From Camelus dromedarius (lineage: Eukaryota): a stretch of 64,000 nucleotides of DNA. The notes beneath the pieces are model-generated. The model was not told where the DNA came from, did not search any database, and saw only the letters and a program-made list of their open reading frames with translations. The stretch lies in assembly GCF_036321535.1 (NCBI RefSeq), contig NC_087453.1:23560001-23624000 (forward strand), written 5' to 3'. The position numbers and the translations under genes were made by a program. Shown here piece after piece: positions 9,365 to 24,110 of the stretch (position 1 is its first letter; each line of letters opens with the position of its first letter).

Positions 9365-10958
9365 GCCCAAGTCATCAGTATCTTTATTTTATTTATTGTA
9401 CTGGAGAAGTAGGAAACAACACAGTCTTGTTGAGGACTAAGCAATACCAAGTAAATTGCATAAATGGGATTTTCAAAAAGCACACAAAGTAACTCTAAAA
9501 CAATCTATACATTTCAGAACATCATGAGAGGCCTGGGGGTTGTGCATGAAGATGTGAGCTCAATAGCGTCTTATACAAAATAACCAAACTCAAGTTCATT
9601 TCCTCCCCTATCCAGGCCAGCCTCCTGGATCCACAAACCAAACCATAGTGCCTGGGGACAAATGAGAGACAGATTCAGAGAGGCAGAGAGAAAGAGACAG
9701 ACAAAGAGACAGAAGAGAGGACTCTGACTGAAACCAAAGCATCAGGAGGTCCCTGTCTCTGATTCTGGGTTATCTGAATCAAGGGAACTCATTTGGCCTC
9801 AAGCATTTAATCATTTCATTCCTCTCTGTGGTTTCACTTGGAGGCATTAAGAGGAAAGAATCATCACGGGGGATAAAGAGGGCCTTTTCCTCTTTCTAGC
9901 TGTCGCTTCTGGATTCCCTTACCCAATGCCCAATGCATATGTTTGGCCAGATGGCTTGGACTCTTGGCAGCAGATTCAGCTGCTCAAGAACACGGTTTTG
10001 CTTAACCTCATCAACTTGACTCAGCTTCAGTTCATCCTGGGGTTGGAGTGTGATACCAATCAGTTTAATTAGCTTAATGAGGGCTGAGGGAACCGGTCCA
10101 CATTTTGAGTCTGTTGCACAGAACAAATTGGTTTGCCTCGCTCCCTCCTTGGTCCTTTCAGCATTCAGGAGAGCTGCTCTCATTAACCATTTCGGAAAGG
10201 GATTTTCACTCCCTTCCCCTCCTGTGAGGAGTTGGGCGCTGTCCAGGGTACCGACACGGACTGGAATCCAGGAACTGGGTTCTTCAGAAGGTGTGTTTCT
10301 AAACAAAGAGAACTCAGAGTACATTGACCAAACATTTAACCCACTGGGAAACGGAACCCTAGTGTAGGAATTCCTGCTCCAATAAAAAAGCAGTGTTTGA
10401 GCTTTTTACCTAAAACACGGTCTCCACATGTAGGTGGATCTTTTGAGGTGTGAGAATAAAATGTTAGGATTTTTATTTGTTTATCTATCTTGTTTTAGAT
10501 TTCTCTTTTGTATGTTTATGATACATATTTACCATATAACTGAATATGTCTGCGTGGGAGGGGGTATGATCATTTTTTCTTCTTAGAGAAGCATTGAGCA
10601 GTAAAGTTTGGAGATCATAGATCCAGAGGGATCAAGAAGTCCGTCTGGATTCCAGGAACTGGGGAGTCACATGAATGGGGTGGAGGGATTGATACCAAAA
10701 GCTGCTGCTGGCAGTAGTTTTAGAAGCATAGGGGCAGAGCCAAGCATTAAGCCTACGGGAGAGGGGACCCTCTATTCTCACCCCTCACTGACCCCAGACA
10801 AACACTGCAGAAGACAGGCAGGCTAGGCTTGAGTGTTTTGTAGAAAATGCCGAACGGAGGATGGAGTGGGGGGCCACAGGGGGAGGATGAATGAGTGCCT
10901 TCCAATCTGGAAGGGCGTCAGGGGAAGCTCCTGACTCAACTCCGTGGTGGGGAGGGGT
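9365..10958 (-). other. PDYN: PDYN 3' UTR (about 1.6 kb)
   Basis: Runs from the stop codon to the AATAAA cluster at 9397-9383. No splice signals needed. Confidence 0.85.
9383..9397 (-). terminator. PDYN polyadenylation signal: three overlapping AATAAA
   Basis: Minus strand reads CAATAAATAAAATAAAGATACTG, followed about 30 nt later by a (TG)12 GU-rich downstream element (9355-9332). Confidence 0.88.
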
Positions 10959-11600
10959 TTACACATCAAAAAGCTCTTCGTAGTAGGCATTGGGGTCTTC
11001 CTGAGACCGAGTAACCACCTTGAACTGGCGCCGGAGAAAACCGCCATAGCGCTTCTGGTTGTTCCACTTGAGCTTGGGACGGATGCGCCGCAAGAAGCCC
11101 CCGTAGCGCTTGTAGAGGTCCTCATGGCCCACCTTATCCCCATCTTCATCCCCCTCCCCAGCCACCTCTGAGCTCCTCTTGGGGTATTTGCGCAAGAAGC
11201 CCCCATAGCGTTTGACCTGCTCCTTGGGGTGTTTCTCATCGGAATCCAGCGCTCCAGCCTCCATGGCACCGTCATCTGGCTGGGTGTCCCCCAGCAGCTC
11301 AGAGTCCGCTTCCTCCCCTAACCTGCTGGAGAGACCCCTGAGCTTCTCCTCCAGGCTCCTGCTCAGAGCATTCTCCTCTGTGGGGGTGCTGAGGAGGAAT
11401 CGGTTTTTTTCCAGCTCCTTCCAGAAGGGCCCCACGTGCTTGGCCAGCTCACTATAGGGTTCTTCCAAAGTGGCCTTGCTCTCCAAGTCTTCCTTGCCCT
11501 CAAGCCCGAGGGTGAGGGGAGTGAGAAAAGACAGAAGTCCCTGGCATCTCTCCCACTCCTCAGTGGGCTGCGGGGCGGCCTGGCATTCCAGCGAGCAAAT
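10959..11600 (-). CDS. PDYN: Prodynorphin CDS part 2 (exon 4): 213 aa plus TAA; total protein 256 aa
   Basis: Acceptor TCTTTTGCAG/ATTTGC at 11601/11600. In frame ICSLECQ...three KR-YGGFL cores...YYEELFDV-stop. Six conserved Cys in the N-terminal domain across the two exons. Confidence 0.99.
10962..11048 (-). other. PDYN: Leumorphin (dynorphin B-29) [29 protein letters not shown]; dynorphin B(1-13) at 11048-11010
   Basis: Direct translation. The YYEELFDV C-terminus is the pig/cattle type rather than human YSGELFDA. Confidence 0.95.
11055..11105 (-). other. PDYN: Dynorphin A(1-17) coding segment [17 protein letters not shown] (Asn at position 15)
   Basis: Direct translation, flanked by KR on both sides. 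Codon 15 is AAC at 11063-11061. Confidence 0.95.
11178..11207 (-). other. PDYN: Alpha-neoendorphin coding segment [10 protein letters not shown]
   Basis: Direct translation, flanked by KR and R. Confidence 0.97.
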
Positions 11601-11791
11601 CTGCAAAAGACCCCCCAAGACCATAGTGGTAATGCCACCCCCAGCAAATCATCAAACCACAAGCCCCTGCCCCAGAAAGTCCCCTGTTCAGTGTCTGAGA
11701 TAATCAAAAAGCCATTACTAAGCCCCGGACTGCCCACTTTAACATGCCCACTTTAATGCTCCCAATGGTGCATTAAAAAGGTAGGTGACTT

Positions 11792-11850
11792 TGTGCCTGT
11801 GCGGAAGATGAGGAAACAGACGTGGAGAGGTGAAACAGCTTCCCCCAGGA
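11792..11850 (+). repeat. Left arm of 59-bp inverted repeat in PDYN intron 3 (MIR-derived)
   Basis: TGTGCCTGTGCGGAAGATGAGGAAACAGACGTGGAGAGGTGAAACAGCTTCCCCCAGGA; 56/59 identical to the reverse complement of 12358-12416. Confidence 0.95.
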
Positions 11851-12357
11851 TGCATGGCCACAGGTGACACTGCCAAAACTGGAAGTAAGATCTTCCCGTA
11901 GTGCTCTGCTACGCTCACCAGTAATCTTGTACTTCTGACTCCAGAAGGAGTAGTTGGTTCTCCCAACCTTTCCAAGGTGTGAAGGATGCTGCAAACACTT
12001 CATAGAGAGGGACAGAAGCCAAGCAGAATGGTGGAAAGAACACAGGTGAGGACATGTTTGAGGGTTCTTCAAACTGGGGAGATAACAGTATCTACTTCAT
12101 AAGAGTAGGGAGAATTCAAACATTATAATGATGATGATGACCACAATGCAATGCTGCACAGTCCCAGAACTTGGACCCAGGTTCTAATGCCATGAGTCTT
12201 CACGTTTAACCACTGTGCTTTCCTGAGATCATATATGGGCAGCACCCAGTGCGTTGTCATGTGCATCTCAAGAAAGAGCGGCTAGAATTGTATACTTAAT
12301 ATTTTGTATCATCATCTCAGGGAACCGGACCCATTTTGCAAATAGCTTTCCCGTGTG

Positions 12358-12416
12358 TCCTTGGGGAAGTTGTTTCACCTCTCCATGTCTGTTTCCTCAT
12401 CTTCCGCACAGGCACA
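12358..12416 (-). repeat. Right arm of 59-bp inverted repeat in PDYN intron 3 (MIR-derived)
   Basis: Reverse complement TGTGCCTGTGCGGAAGATGAGGAAACAGACATGGAGAGGTGAAACAACTTCCCCAAGGA. Confidence 0.95.
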
Positions 12417-13008
12417 GAGAAGGGGTTCCAAGGTCATGCAACTAGAAAGTGGCAGAACCAAAGCCTGTGTTCTGTCTGCCACACCCTGCACCTCTGGGCC
12501 AGCTGGTCTGCTGTCACGGGAGAGTCAAAGGGAGAAGCTTGACTCAAAGTAAAGCCAGCAAAGCCAGCCAAGAGATGCTAAAGTCCCAGGAGAGGGGTCA
12601 GGCTTGGATACTGACAACCAGATCCTGGCATCCAGGGGTGGTGGAAAGAGCTCCTTCCGTGGGAGTGACTAGATTTGGGGGGTGCCCATCAGCCTGGTGC
12701 AAGCAGCCCTGAAAAGTTCATATAGTGCTGTTGACTCCTGAAGTCAGCACTGCCTCTTGAATGACACTCCTTGTTGCCAGGCAATCGGCTCCCTGGAAAC
12801 CTAAGTGTCTGCCCCAGACCTGAGGGAGCCCATGGTGGTGAGGTCTGGGGTGGGGACGGGAGCTGGAGAACAGCAGCCCCTGCAGTGCAGGCTGACAGAA
12901 CATGCCCTGCACAGGCGGGACCTTCCCTCTCTGGGCTCACACACAGACGGTCCCTTCCTCGCACGGGTGCCAGGACCTGGGCGTGGAGCAGCCTTGCCTG
13001 AAACTCAC

Positions 13009-13137
13009 CAGGGGGTCGATGGGCTTGGGCCCATCATGGGTCTTCACAGCACACAAGGAGCACCGGGACAGGCAGTCCGCTGTGGCGGAGGGGAGCGCGA
13101 GGAGGCAGGCAGCCAGCACCAGCCCCTGCCACGCCAT
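13009..13137 (-). CDS. PDYN: Prodynorphin CDS part 1 (exon 3): signal peptide and start of Cys-rich domain, 43 aa [43 protein letters not shown]
   Basis: ATG at 13137-13135 (minus). 129 nt followed by a GTGAGT donor at 13008-13003, phase 0. Sequence matches the mammalian prodynorphin N-terminus. Confidence 0.98.
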
Positions 13138-13153
13138 TCTGTCTTGGCTCTTC
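13138..13153 (-). other. PDYN: 5' UTR portion of PDYN exon 3 (tandem CAGCAG acceptor; alternative start 13156)
   Basis: ATCTCTCCC CAG CAG GAAGAGCCAAGACAGA ATG on the minus strand. The distal AG gives a 145-nt exon. Confidence 0.85.
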
Positions 13154-14627
13154 CTGCTGGGGAGAGATAAAGAGAAAATGATATCTGTGATCGCCCACAC
13201 TGCGGGGTGTGTCCTGAGCCTGCAAAGCCATCTCATCAACTTCTGCTGGCAGCCCTGCACTGCAGGGCAAGCGTTCTTGTTCCCATTCCACAGTCCAACC
13301 AACAGAGGCCCAGGGAGGAGGAGCGGGTGCGTAAGGCCAACAGTCCAGGAAGGGCGCTACCAGGGGCTGTGTGCCTGCTGTGTGCTAGGAGCTTTCCTGT
13401 GTGTTCACATTCAATCTGCACAAGACTCTTAACGTGGGTAGTGCCATGGGGAGGTTGAGGCTCAGAGAGGAGAAATGATTGCTCACACAACTAGGAAGTC
13501 TGCCAGACTTCAGAACCCGCCAAGCCAGAAGGCACTTGTCTACCTGCTTTTCTGTGTTCTCTGGGCCTTCCCTCACTTGCCCTTCTCTCCTGCACTCCAG
13601 GCTGTCCCCAGCCCAGTCCTTTCTGCTGTGGACCTTCTCCACCCCAGCACTTCTGCCTGCTCTGGCCAGAGCTCCATCTTCACCCATCTCCATGCTGGCC
13701 TCCCTGCCTCCAGCATCCTCCCCTGGTCCCTTTTACCCACCTTGTAGTGCCTGTCTCATCATATCAATCTTGGGATCAGACCCATCAGGCTGGGTCAGGC
13801 CTGGCCCTTCTCCTAAATGAGGGACACCCTCAATTTCATCCCTACATCCAACTCTTCAGCTCTGGGTTCCAACCACGTCTGGCTCCCTGTAATTTCCCTA
13901 ATGAATGGATCAGGCCCTGCCCCACCTCTGGCCCTTTGCACATGCTATCCCCTCTTCCTGGGAAACCCTCCTCTTCTCTTCTGTTACCTGTCATTTAGGC
14001 CCTGGAGGAGACATCACCTCCTCCAGGCAGCTTTCCCTGATGTCCTAGGTTAGATGGGATGTTCTTCCTGTGTGTTTTCCCAGAAATTTGTGCTTCCTCC
14101 GTGAAAATATCCCACTCTGGATAATTAACTATGTGAGTCTTCAGACTTTGGTTCCATGAAGGCAGGAGCTGTATCCTCTTTTGGTCTCTGAAATACTTTC
14201 TCTGTGTTCCTCAAATATGCCAGGCTTGCCCTTACCTCAGGGCATTTGCACTTCCTGCTTCTCCATCTGTAGTGCTCTGGCCTCAGATTTTCACAGGGCT
14301 CACTTCTTCTTGTAATTGAATGGATTAAGTGTCATGTGCCTGGGGAGGCATTTGCTGACCCCTGTCTGTGTCTTGGCTTCCTGGGTCTCTCTCACATCCC
14401 CCTGCTTTGTCTGCACTGGAACACTCACCGTTTCGCATCGTCCTGTTGTCTGGTGCGTGTTGTCAATGTTCTCATTACCATTCCCCCACTGGAATATTAG
14501 CTCCCAAAGGGCACAGACCCTTACTGGCATTGTCCCTGCTGTACCCTGACCAGCACACAGTACGTCTTCAACGAATACTAGGCAGATGAATGAATGCTTC
14601 ACAAATAGTCTATTAAAAGCTGTCTCT

Positions 14628-14787
14628 GGGGAGGGTATAGCTCAGTGGTAGAGTGTGTGCTTAGCATGCACAAGGTCCTGGGTTCAATCCCCAGTATCCC
14701 TATTTAAAAATAAATCAGTAAATAAATAAACCTACCCCCCCAAATTTTTTTCAAAAACAAACAAAAAAATTAAAAAAAAAAAAAAAA
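14628..14787 (+). mobile_element. tRNA-derived camelid-type SINE (Vic-1-like), copy A
   Basis: GGGGAGGGTATAGCTCAGTGGTAGAG head with A box, GGGTTCAATCCC B box, A-rich tail. TSD AAAAGCTGTC(T/C)C at 14615-14626 and 14784-14795. Confidence 0.9.
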
Positions 14788-14795
14788 GCTGTCCC

Positions 14796-14957
14796 GAGGG
14801 GAGGGGAGGGTATAGCTCAGTGATAAAGTGCATGCCTAGCTTGCATGAGGTCCTGGATTCAATTCCCAGTGCACCCATAAATAAATAAATAAATAAGTAA
14901 ATAAATAAATAAATAATCTAATTACCAACCCCCTCAAACTAAAACAAAAAACAAAAA
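14796..14957 (+). mobile_element. tRNA-derived camelid-type SINE, copy B, directly behind copy A
   Basis: Second GGGGAGGGTATAGCTCAG head at 14803, GGATTCAATTCC B box, (TAAA)n and A tail. TSD-like AAAAACTGTCCC at 14953-14964. Confidence 0.88.
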
Positions 14958-17655: not shown

Positions 17656-17837
17656 GTGAGGGGTATAGCTCAGTGGTAGGGTGCCTGCTCAGCGTGTGTG
17701 AAGTCCTGGGTTCAGTCCCCAGGACTTCCACTTAAAAAATAAGTAATTAAATAAGCCTGATTACCTCCCCCCAAATTAAATAAATGTTATTTTACAAAAA
17801 TAAACTAAATGTTCTAAAAAAAAAAAAAAAAGAAACA
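17656..17837 (+). mobile_element. tRNA-derived camelid-type SINE, copy C, inserted into a MIR
   Basis: GGGGTATAGCTCAGTGGTAG head, GGGTTCAGTCCC B box, poly(A). 14-bp TSD AAAAGCCTAC(T/C)CAG at 17642-17655 and 17838-17851. Confidence 0.9.
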
Positions 17838-20800
17838 AAAAGCCTACCCAGTGCCAGGCTGCGCCTTCCCACTTTACACGTTATTCTAATCCTCACAACA
17901 ACCCAGAGGTGAGTTTTTATACCCACTGTACACAGGACAAGACTGAGGCCTGGAGAGGAGAATTTGCATGCCCAAACTCATTTGGTTTGTAAGCAGATGC
18001 ATAAGGCTTCCCAAGGGATCTCTCTGGTCTCTAATGGAGACGCATCAGCCCTGAGCTTTCCTAAGACATCCTATTTCCTTCCTTGGACGGGATAAACAAA
18101 TGATTGAGTAACGTCAGATGTCAGACGAGTCCCGGGGGAGGGACTTTGCTTTGCTGTAGGGATTTGCCCGGAAGCTGTACATTACGGGTAGCCCTGCCTG
18201 GTCATCTCCCCTGACTTTGCTGTTCATCTCTATGTAGGACGGGGAAGTGAGCTGCTTGGTGAGCTCCAGGGGCCGTGAGTCAGGCCCAGACCCCCCTGGG
18301 AGGGAGAGGGTGGTGGGGTGCGGGTTGGAGTCACCTACGGTGAAGGAGGGGCCTCTTTCACAAACTCAGCTTGGCCGGCCAGGGAGCCTCCTAAGGTCTC
18401 CCTTCCCCCTAAAGTAAAACCACTTTTGTAAGTTCAGGAAGCATTTCTTCAGCCACTACCTCGAGGCATGCTGGGCCAGCTCAGTGATGACAGCCTGGGC
18501 GGGTGGGGAGGAAGGGGGAGTCTCCGCCTTGGGAAAGGGGATTTTGGACTCACCAGCCTCCACAGTCACGCGACCCAGCCCTTATACCGAACCTCTTTCT
18601 ATGTGTACATCCTGGCGAACCCTGATTCATACGACAGCCTCCCCTTCATTTACATTTGTCTTGGCTGTTTTCACACAACAAAAGCACAGCTGAGTCCAGA
18701 AGCCAAAGATATTTACTAGCTGGTCCTTGACAGGAAAAGTTTGCTGACCCTGCTTTCATTAATTTTATAACCATTTTACAATTCTCATTATTCTAGCAGT
18801 TCTGAAGCTGATTTTCTTGGGGAAATCAGAGGGGACTTGCTCCTCTGTCCACGCCTCAGTCTTCTTACCTGTCAGTGGGTTTGTGTCACTTCCCCACTGT
18901 GTCTCCATAAGGACCCCTAAGACGCTATCATTTAAAGGCCAGCACACAGCAGACCCTTTCTTCACCAAGAGCCCAGAGTTCCTTGAAAGGGAAGGGATCT
19001 CCCGCCCTCTTATCTCCTCTTGATATTTCTGTATTGTATTCAGTGGGCTCTGAGGAGCAGCAAGCATTTTTATTTAAAAAGCCAGCATGGAATAATAATG
19101 GCTTGATTTAACATCGCAATTATCTCTCTGAGCACTTTATCCGCATATGATTATCCCTATTTGATAGAAGAGGAAATGGGAAAAGGTAGAAATGAAGTCA
19201 CTTGTTTAAGGTCACATCATGAGTCAGGAGGGAAAGGGAGACAGAACTGGGGCCTCCCACACCCGGGCCCTGACTCGCGTGGAGGCCATGGTGTCGTTGG
19301 ATAACCTTCTAGCAGTCACTGCGCTGCTGTGGCCCTGTGCCAGGCCTGGGGTGGCCCGTGGACCCTCCTGGGCAGGTGCTACCATTACAGGCTCAGTTTC
19401 CAGGTGGGAAGAGTGAGGACTGCGTGACAGCGCCCCCGGGGCCCCAGGCACACGCATGCCAGAGGAGTGGCAGCGACTGGGTCCCTTGCACCCCCTGTTT
19501 AGGGCACAGCGACCAGCTTGTATCTCAATTACTGCATCCTCACCTCTGGAGGGTCCAGTAGCCTGGGCTCTATTAGCCCATTTACTGGATGGCGAGACAG
19601 AGACTTGGAGAAGCAAAACGACTGGGCCAAGAGGCCAGGCCCCAGCAGAGCAGGCTCAGGGTCGGTTTGAGACTCCACTCCGCAAGCCATCGTGAGCTGT
19701 AGGCACAGATGAAACGTCCACAGGGCTCCCCTCATTCCAGCTCATGTTCCTGAAGATAAGACTGTTCTAGGAATTTTACCCCACTCAAAAATATATGAAG
19801 TTCACCTTTGTGGGTCTCCAGTGGGCTGGCCAATGGAGACCTCCAAAACCGGAAAAGAGTTTAAGACTTTTCATGCCATTAACAAAGAATGGATTATCAG
19901 TTTGGGAGGATGGGGGCTCCAGTTCTGAATGGAAAGTGAGGGCACTGGTTAGTCCACCAAGAAGTCAAAACATAGCAGAGCATGAGGCCCACGCTGAGGG
20001 CTGGCCGCCTCTCAGGCTATTTGCTGTGCAGAGACCAGTGAAAGACGGCCCTGTGATCCACATTCATGGCGGGACCATTAAGCACATTTTTAAAAGGCTG
20101 TTTTTCAAGAGCAAGATTCCTTTGGAACTCCCACCCTTCATTATTGGATGCAGTTAAGAGATGGGGAGAAAAGCAACGAAAGGGGGACCAGAGAGATGGA
20201 GGTGCAGAGATACAGAGAGAGAGAGAGAAAAGAACGAGAGGGAGACAGAGAAGGGCTTAGAAGAGCAGAGGGTGAAATGACAGACATGCGGGAAAAGAAA
20301 ATACAGGTGAGACGCCGAGATGGGTGGGGAGAGGGCGCAGGAGAAGGTATAACGAAAAGGAGGAAGAGGGGGAGGAGCGGGAACAAGACAAAGATGGAGA
20401 GAAGGCAGGGAGGAAGTGGATTTTGATTCAGGAGGTTGACCTACTATGTGAATCACAAACACCAGTTCCCTCCTCCCACAACCCTTTGATCTGCCCTTTG
20501 TTCCTAGTGGCCAGTGGGCCCGAGGCCCAATCACATAACTGCTCCGTAAGCCCTTGTCAGGTTAAAGTGAACTGTCCAATGATAGGTCAAGGGGCCAAAT
20601 GCCGATGCCCGCAACGAGCACGCCTGTTGCCCGCGGTGACCACTCTAGCCAGGCGGATGCTGGAAGGATTCATGGAGAGGCCTCCTGAGCCAGGGGATGT
20701 GCCTCGTGGCCCTGGGCTGTTACCTTCCTGCCAGGAGCATCTGTCTGGGCGCAGGCTGGAGGGATTAATGAGCTCCAGCTTCCTAGGACCCGGGGACACC

Positions 20801-23639: not shown

Positions 23640-24110
23640 CATAGAACAAGAGAGAGAGAGGTGGGGAAGGACAAAGCCCAAAAGAGTAGGGACACAGAGT
23701 CAGAGAGAGACAGAAAGACAGAGATATAGAGACTGGTGGAGACAGAGAGAGAGTCAGAGAGAGAGACAGAGATATATAGAGACATATGGAGACAGAGAGT
23801 CAGATAGACAAACAGATAAGAGACAGAGTCAGACAGATATAGAGACAGATGGAGACAGACAGAGGGAGAAAGGAGCAAAACAGAAAGATTCAGAGAGAAT
23901 CAGTATCAGAGAGAGGCCCCGTCAGAAGACGTGGAGAAATACAGACAAAGCCGGGGAGAAAGAGTCAGAAAATCACAGAGACTCGAAGAGAGCGTCAGGT
24001 GTCAGAGACGGGGAAACCCAAAGAGACAGACAGAAGCAGAGAGACAGAGGAAGAGGGAGAAGGAAGCCAGGACAGAAGACAGACTCAGAACCCACACGAC
24101 ACACAGATGC
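23640..24110 (+). repeat. GA-rich low-complexity tract (GAGACAGA-like units) in the PDYN upstream promoter
   Basis: About 470 bp of degenerate AG/ACAG repeats, strongly purine-skewed. Confidence 0.85.

Follow-up and report, generated by a model that had tools for sequence, protein, structure and literature searches.

An inverted copy of one ancient MIR element within another in intron 3 of camelid PDYN, and the long pre-mRNA stem it is predicted to form

We analysed a 64,000-nt stretch of dromedary DNA (the window, to which all positions refer) that carries PDYN on its minus strand. Exon 3 ends at 13009 and is followed by the donor GTGAGT, while exon 4 begins at 11600 and its translation holds three YGGFL peptides. 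The exon 4 product includes alpha-neoendorphin, dynorphin A and dynorphin B and is 100% identical to Camelus dromedarius proenkephalin-B; in this translation dynorphin A (11055-11105) has Asn at position 15. The annotation of alpaca (Vicugna pacos, L003 1001-64621) includes a 321-aa PDYN isoform with a gene range of ~64 kb, which implies an annotated far-upstream coding exon that is missing from the 256-aa form.

Several other repeats and low-complexity tracts occur in the window. A family of ~103-nt direct repeats lies at 14628-14730, 14803-14905 and 17656-17758, the later copies being 81% and 69% identical to the first. ARAGORN calls a tRNA-Ala (AGC) at 14631-14702, within the first of these copies, which is probably a tRNA-derived SINE head or a pseudogene and not a working tRNA gene. 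Purine-rich AGAGAC-like low-complexity arrays are found on the plus strand at 23686-24061, 9651-9726 and 20180-20237, in agreement with strong GC and AT skew at 20-24 kb.

Intron 3 of PDYN contains a long inverted repeat (Table 1). Positions 11792-11850 and the reverse complement of 12358-12416 share 56 of 59 bases, and 192 nt separate the left arm from exon 4, both values reproducing those of a first-pass annotation made from the sequence. Ungapped extension lengthens the arms to 69 nt at 90% identity, separated by 493 nt. A 24-mer specific to the arms occurs exactly twice in the 64 kb where 0 occurrences are expected, the PDYN arms are the sole inverted repeat of at least 40 nt within the window, and the match between them is far beyond what chance can account for. 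In PDYN pre-mRNA the left arm provides the 3′ strand of the stem, and the mismatches within the 59-nt arms are C.A (11822/12386), C.A (11838/12370) and G.A (11846/12362), the two A.C and one A.G described previously. The spacer between the arms holds further old MIR fragments (weak MIR matches at 12072-12117 and 12158-12196) together with an (ATG)n run.

Table 1 Features of PDYN intron 3 in the dromedary window
Feature	Position	Strand	Description
PDYN intron 3	11601..13008	-	1408 nt; acceptor AG 11602-11601, donor GT 13008-13007
MIR-D	11750..11896	-	near full-length ancient MIR, PDYN-sense; nhmmer model 5-152, E = 1e-11
Left arm	11789..11857	-	parent copy; native core of MIR-D, the downstream old MIR
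Candidate A-to-I sites	11809, 11831, 11840	-	T>C on the plus strand in run X18; A paired with U in the predicted stem
Spacer / stem loop	11858..12350	-	493 nt of ordinary orthologous intron; aligns to all outgroups at 76-84%
MIR-U resumption after insertion	12327..12343	-	sense ATTTGCAAAATGGG...; aligns to outgroup ATCTGCAAAATGGGG
Exit-junction filler	12344..12350	-	7 nt, sense GAAAGCT, before MIR-U resumes at ATTTGCAAAATGGG; from multi-species alignment
Right arm	12351..12419	-	in Camelus and Vicugna; no counterpart in whale, hippo, cattle or donkey
MIR-U 5′ part	12411..12466	-	upstream ancient MIR, PDYN-sense; model 20-83, E = 1e-6; interrupted by the insertion

To assign the arms to a repeat family we utilized a MIR profile obtained by iterative nhmmer on the window itself and rebuilt from 41 copies excluding the PDYN locus, its consensus being window-derived and not that of Dfam. 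The left arm falls within MIR-D, an element found in all species compared, while the right arm matches MIR model positions 42-98 only, in the opposite orientation (nhmmer, E = 6e-8). The other MIR-core pairs (n = 527, among 33 window cores) have a mean identity of 57% (sd 6.7, max 74.5%) against 90% for the arms, in line with the earlier proposal that both arms derive from the MIR core and are too alike to be independent copies. Both share departures from the MIR consensus, namely GTTGTTTC, a 2-nt deletion and the tail. All three of these had been recorded in the first-pass annotation and are real, but the tail is not ‘non-MIR’ sequence as stated there. It is MIR sequence diverged in place, because the downstream MIRs of outgroup species carry intermediate forms of it (hippo TCTCCCACATGGGTAAC vs consensus TCTGTAAAATGGGGATA).

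Both arms are present in the dromedary window, in two further Camelus assemblies (identical to the window over 1741 nt), in two Camelus ferus assemblies and in alpaca. At least 17 DNA runs from several studies contain every sampled 31-mer of the stretch, and a 3402-nt contig of organism B extends across the entire intron, both arms included. This contig also has the Camelus ferus state at 12775 and 12857, while at the nine remaining ferus-specific sites (11620-12990) it has that of dromedary, a mixture which suggests shared polymorphism or introgression.

Orthologs of intron 3 were obtained from four outgroups, blue whale, hippo, cattle and donkey, the loci being reached via PDYN proteins; Suina (pig, peccary) were outside this set. 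Left-arm sequence, which in the window lies within one contiguous MIR match spanning the arm and both of its flanks, is found in all outgroups. The right arm is lacking in all four with flanks aligned on both sides, the outgroup alignment reaching window position 12410 and resuming at ~12343 with ~10-13 nt between, typically CAGTTTCCTC. The outgroup MIR-U is one contiguous sense-oriented match extending from model position 14/25 to 111/113, and there is no inverted repeat of at least 25 nt in intron 3 of blue whale, hippo, cattle or donkey. Intron 3 of the non-camelids thus contains two ancient MIR SINEs ~570 nt apart, both in gene-sense orientation, and two direct-orientation MIRs are taken as the ancestral arrangement because the outgroups are without the right arm and their MIR-U is uninterrupted.

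Set against this arrangement, the camelid intron is shown by the alignment to carry the product of a single mutational event in the camelid stem lineage, the copying of ~64 nt of the MIR-D core as its reverse complement into the core of MIR-U. The novel segment is the reverse complement of its donor, is identical to it at the camelid ancestor and is lacking in the four outgroups. The copied part of the right arm (~12351-12414) corresponds to 11794-11857, while the end of the arm (12415-12419) is native upstream-MIR sequence that is homeologous by coincidence. The resulting inverted repeat was perfect over ~66 bp and had a spacer of 493 nt. It is older than the split of camel and alpaca and has decayed separately in each lineage since.

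The insertion replaced 10 nt (CAGTTTCCTC), directly after which the outgroups have ATCTGCAAAATGGGG. Its entry junction lies in a homeologous patch with 8/10 identity (upstream CTCTGAGCCT vs reverse-complemented donor CTTTGTGCCT, product CTCTGTGCCT) and is a hybrid, CTCTG/TGCCT, with 2-5 nt of exact overlap within the homeologous decamer. Clear microhomology was not seen at the exit junction, where a short filler precedes the resumption of MIR-U. In alpaca the filler and the bases after it include a 9-mer that matches the complement of a portion of the arm, and the filler may, at low confidence, represent a further short stretch copied from a template. The arm end overlaps the MIR fragment at 12411-12419, which had first suggested transfer from right to left; this overlap is due to junction homeology, and the outgroups show that the direction was left to right.

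These data bear on two readings of the repeat that need no such event. An assembly artefact, or a MITE or other DNA transposon with terminal inverted repeats, would fit the bare inverted-repeat geometry and draws nothing further in its favour. Both arms occur together on contiguous sequence in independent assemblies and many DNA runs, which answers the earlier concern that the second arm might be missing from raw reads, and a MITE is ruled out by the lack of a target-site duplication at the arm ends and by a spacer (and left arm) that are orthologous intron in species without the right arm; we give either version a negligible probability. The first-pass annotation offered two origins, a local inverted duplication, which the outgroup alignment bears out, and inter-arm gene conversion, in which two pre-existing inverted MIRs would have been homogenised, perhaps repeatedly. 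Gene conversion would explain the high identity of the arms despite their ancient MIR origin, as well as their being still identical at the camelid ancestor. The outgroups, however, contain no inverted partner, the upstream MIR being direct, and the arm was inserted cleanly in place of 10 nt. Nor has there been any homogenisation since camel and alpaca split, the arms having diverged uncorrected from then on, and on these grounds a palindrome homogenised by gene conversion was rejected as highly improbable.

The inverted duplication would be best described as a template switch during replication or repair, of the four-point type 1-4-3-2 (MMBIR- or FoSTeS-like) and of unusually long range, in which replication would leave at point 1, copy the stretch between points 2 and 3 as its reverse complement and re-enter at point 4. 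The reference order 1-4-3-2 is the type that creates inverted repeats in the four-point template-switch model (PMC5453318). Template switches can create RNA hairpins in one step (PMC8794818), and de novo miRNA hairpins have been attributed to them (PMC10710096). As in other template-switch mutations, one event writes a nearby reverse complement into a new site and so yields a perfect inverted repeat, mimicking many coordinated changes with neither selection nor gene conversion required. The PDYN event differs in its size, a ~64-nt fragment and a ~570-nt jump being well above published short-range events, in having two homeologous MIRs as donor and acceptor sites, and in the filler at its exit junction. 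Short-range switches are those of one replication fork, spanning tens of bases in published scans, and long-range switches were explicitly set aside by the authors of the four-point study (PMC5453318). A donor-insertion distance of ~570 nt places the putative event outside that short-range class, among long-range MMBIR or FoSTeS-like variants. As such it belongs to a kind of event already described, of which it is a well-dated case, and is unsurprising to a specialist.

To follow the arms after their formation every variable paired position was polarised using three camelid lineages, the partner arm and the four outgroups. Over 11792-11857 the arms did not differ in the common ancestor of Camelus and Vicugna, the sole standing ancestral difference being 11791/12417, inside the junction homeology. 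All present mismatches post-date this ancestor and none has been compensated by its partner; four changes occurred on the Camelus stem (11852, 11851, 11846 and 12386), two are restricted to dromedary (11855 and 12370) and five to alpaca. CpG decay was considered for 11851/11852 and ruled out, as polarisation reveals that TG became CA in the left arm of Camelus. The Camelini-Lamini split is placed at 11-25 My (PMC1939714), from which our own arithmetic gives an intron rate of ~0.9-2.1e-9 per site per year. By the same arithmetic the insertion is no more than roughly 11-24 My older than the camel-alpaca split, because there were zero differences in 2 x 66 sites at that time. Alignment of orthologous introns, put forward in the first-pass annotation as the means of dating the repeat and carried out here with blue whale, hippo, cattle, donkey and alpaca, thus assigns it to the camelid stem and reveals no compensatory changes.

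Between camel and alpaca 11/128 arm sites differ, compared with 60/1280 in the rest of the intron (8.6% vs 4.7%, p = 0.085). On this evidence the arms evolve no more slowly than the remainder of the intron and show no sign of selection on the stem, a comparison of small counts (11 changes, three camelid lineages). Selection on RNA structure, which had been suggested as a reason for the preservation of the repeat, is therefore disfavoured both by the lack of compensatory changes and by arms that diverge no slower than the intron.

When the 1000 nt upstream of exon 4 are folded in the sense orientation, the MFE and centroid structures both pair the arms in a single long stem (z = -5.9), as the first-pass annotation had anticipated. 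The predicted stem of ~69 bp encloses a 493-nt loop and stops 190 nt before the exon 4 acceptor is reached, with sense duplex energies of -113.7 kcal/mol in dromedary, -126.2 in C. ferus and -125.9 in alpaca. No Rfam match, miRNA precursors included, was obtained at E <= 1 on either strand of 10500-14500 of the window. In an antisense (plus-strand) RNA all six dromedary transition mismatches become G.U, extending the same earlier remark on A-C mismatches, and the duplex strengthens to -134.7 vs -113.7 kcal/mol. An all-G.U pattern would arise by chance ~1 time in 32, and we attach no weight to it as a signal, since the polarised changes are mostly G>A on the sense strand; no antisense transcript was seen. 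Formation of a DNA cruciform, also proposed previously, is unlikely with a spacer of 493 nt.

Evidence on the RNA itself comes from run X18, labelled ‘reproductive system metagenome’, which has no DNA from the same animal and in which the right arm is without RNA coverage. A 151-nt contig at depth 2 (11732-11882) shows four differences from the window, all of them plus-strand T>C and all in the extended left arm, and a mate-like contig from the loop (11896-12046) shows none. Plus-strand T>C changes indicate that any edited RNA would be the PDYN sense strand (A>G). One of the four, at 11855, would have been an edit at an A.C mismatch; it is seen in both X18 and X19 and was rejected as a candidate, as C. 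ferus and alpaca DNA carry that G and it is a genomic allele. Five Camelus assemblies, alpaca, the four outgroups and the MIR consensus all have A at the remaining three (Table 1), none of which is preceded by a 5′ G. With 11855 left out, changed Ts number 3/13 in the arm vs 0/51 outside it (hypergeometric p ~0.007, by hand); with all four sites counted p = 0.0011. Clusters of sense A>G changes within a long duplex are the signature of ADAR hyper-editing, and this one depth-2 contig hints at ADAR hyper-editing of the left arm. Editing had been predicted in the first-pass annotation at 12386 and 12370, positions with no RNA coverage; the present hint concerns sites other than those named there. 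Run X19, for which an RNA or DNA origin is a guess, provides a single 212-nt contig (11749-11960, depth ~10) that is restricted, within intron 3, to the left arm and the sequence on either side, and its only difference is the C. ferus-type allele at 11855. It might represent either a locus from reduced-representation DNA sequencing or a fragment of stable RNA. Our literature search found no paper on editing of the PDYN intron or on the camel editome.

We consider it probable, taking these observations together, that a template switch in the camelid lineage gave rise to the stem, and that the stem would act as a promiscuous ADAR substrate and would otherwise be a neutral by-product with no selected function. 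Two other readings accept the repeat and part from this one over its consequences. The stem may exist in the DNA with no consequence for RNA, the three T>C changes being sequencing or assembly errors or private variants and the arms being unedited in vivo. A single contig at depth 2, where differences below depth 5 may be errors, is compatible with this, as are the fourth T>C having turned out to be an allele that C. ferus and alpaca also carry in their DNA, and the X19 contig, which crosses the left arm with no other change. However, the X18 differences are all of one type and inside the arm with none in the contig flanks or the mate contig, they fall at positions that are A in every assembly, outgroup and consensus compared, and three derived variants of the same type in 32 nt of one haplotype would be extraordinary; we regard an unedited stem as rather unlikely. 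The stem could instead be a selected camelid regulatory RNA structure that tunes exon 4 splicing, by shortening the effective intron or through ADAR or dsRNA-binding proteins. Such a role would suit its persistence from before the Camelini-Lamini split, with energies of -114 to -126 kcal/mol in every camelid examined, its standing as the sole long inverted repeat in the 64 kb around PDYN, its location 190 nt from the acceptor and possible editing in vivo, and as ~30 bp are enough for a stem to act, decay at some positions would be compatible with function. Against this, the arms change at least as fast as the surrounding intron, each of the 11 changes since the split weakens the stem or turns a pair into a wobble, with no compensation in any case, and the stem is lacking in every other mammal examined though PDYN and its splicing are conserved. 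A 66-bp repeat can moreover outlast 11-25 My at neutral rates without selection, and we judge a selected structure to be quite unlikely. An effect of the stem on exon 4 splicing is possible in principle and is unsupported here, and no effect on the opioid peptides is indicated. Still a little less likely, in our view, is a camelid-specific functional innovation in which folding of intron 3 and recruitment of ADAR or dsRNA-binding proteins would alter PDYN splicing kinetics, nuclear retention or mRNA level.

The stem shares features with known intronic inverted SINE pairs, such as the inverted Alu pairs of primates and lineage-specific SINEs in other mammals. It is likewise a predicted intramolecular SINE-derived duplex of >60 bp in an intron and may share with them clustered A>G changes limited to the paired region of the sense transcript, which come here from one contig, and the 69-nt stem found in MFE and centroid folds (-113.7 kcal/mol, sense) is a duplex of the kind on which ADAR acts. 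It differs in being built from an ancient MIR core and a local inverted copy of it, not from two young SINE insertions; MIR pairs are normally too diverged for such strong pairing. Inverted MIR pairs have been reported to promote back-splicing, as in ciRS-7/CDR1as and circCDK8, with the stability of the pairing being important (PMC7371899). PDYN has in common with these the use of MIR-MIR pairing in pre-mRNA as a structural element, whereas the ciRS-7-type pairs flank the circularised exon in separate introns and are conserved across mammals, and the PDYN arms are both in intron 3, have no third copy in the 64 kb and are restricted to camelids. Pairing within an intron favours linear splicing, if anything, and no joints were seen in contigs aligned to the window. 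A back-splicing MIR pair of the ciRS-7 type is ruled out by the position of both arms in the same intron.

The PDYN repeat provides a clean and datable case of how a long RNA hairpin can be born in one mutational step, in which two old repeats of the same orientation became an inverted pair through the backwards copying of one into the other. Near-identical arms derived from an ancient repeat require neither gene conversion nor selection, and the template-switch model would here be extended to a jump of ~570 nt and a fragment of ~64 nt. Were the stem to prove functional, it would represent a lineage-specific shift in opioid-precursor regulation made in one step by a template switch. For the PDYN pre-mRNA of camels, the arms mark the sole place at which to expect long dsRNA and perhaps ADAR editing.
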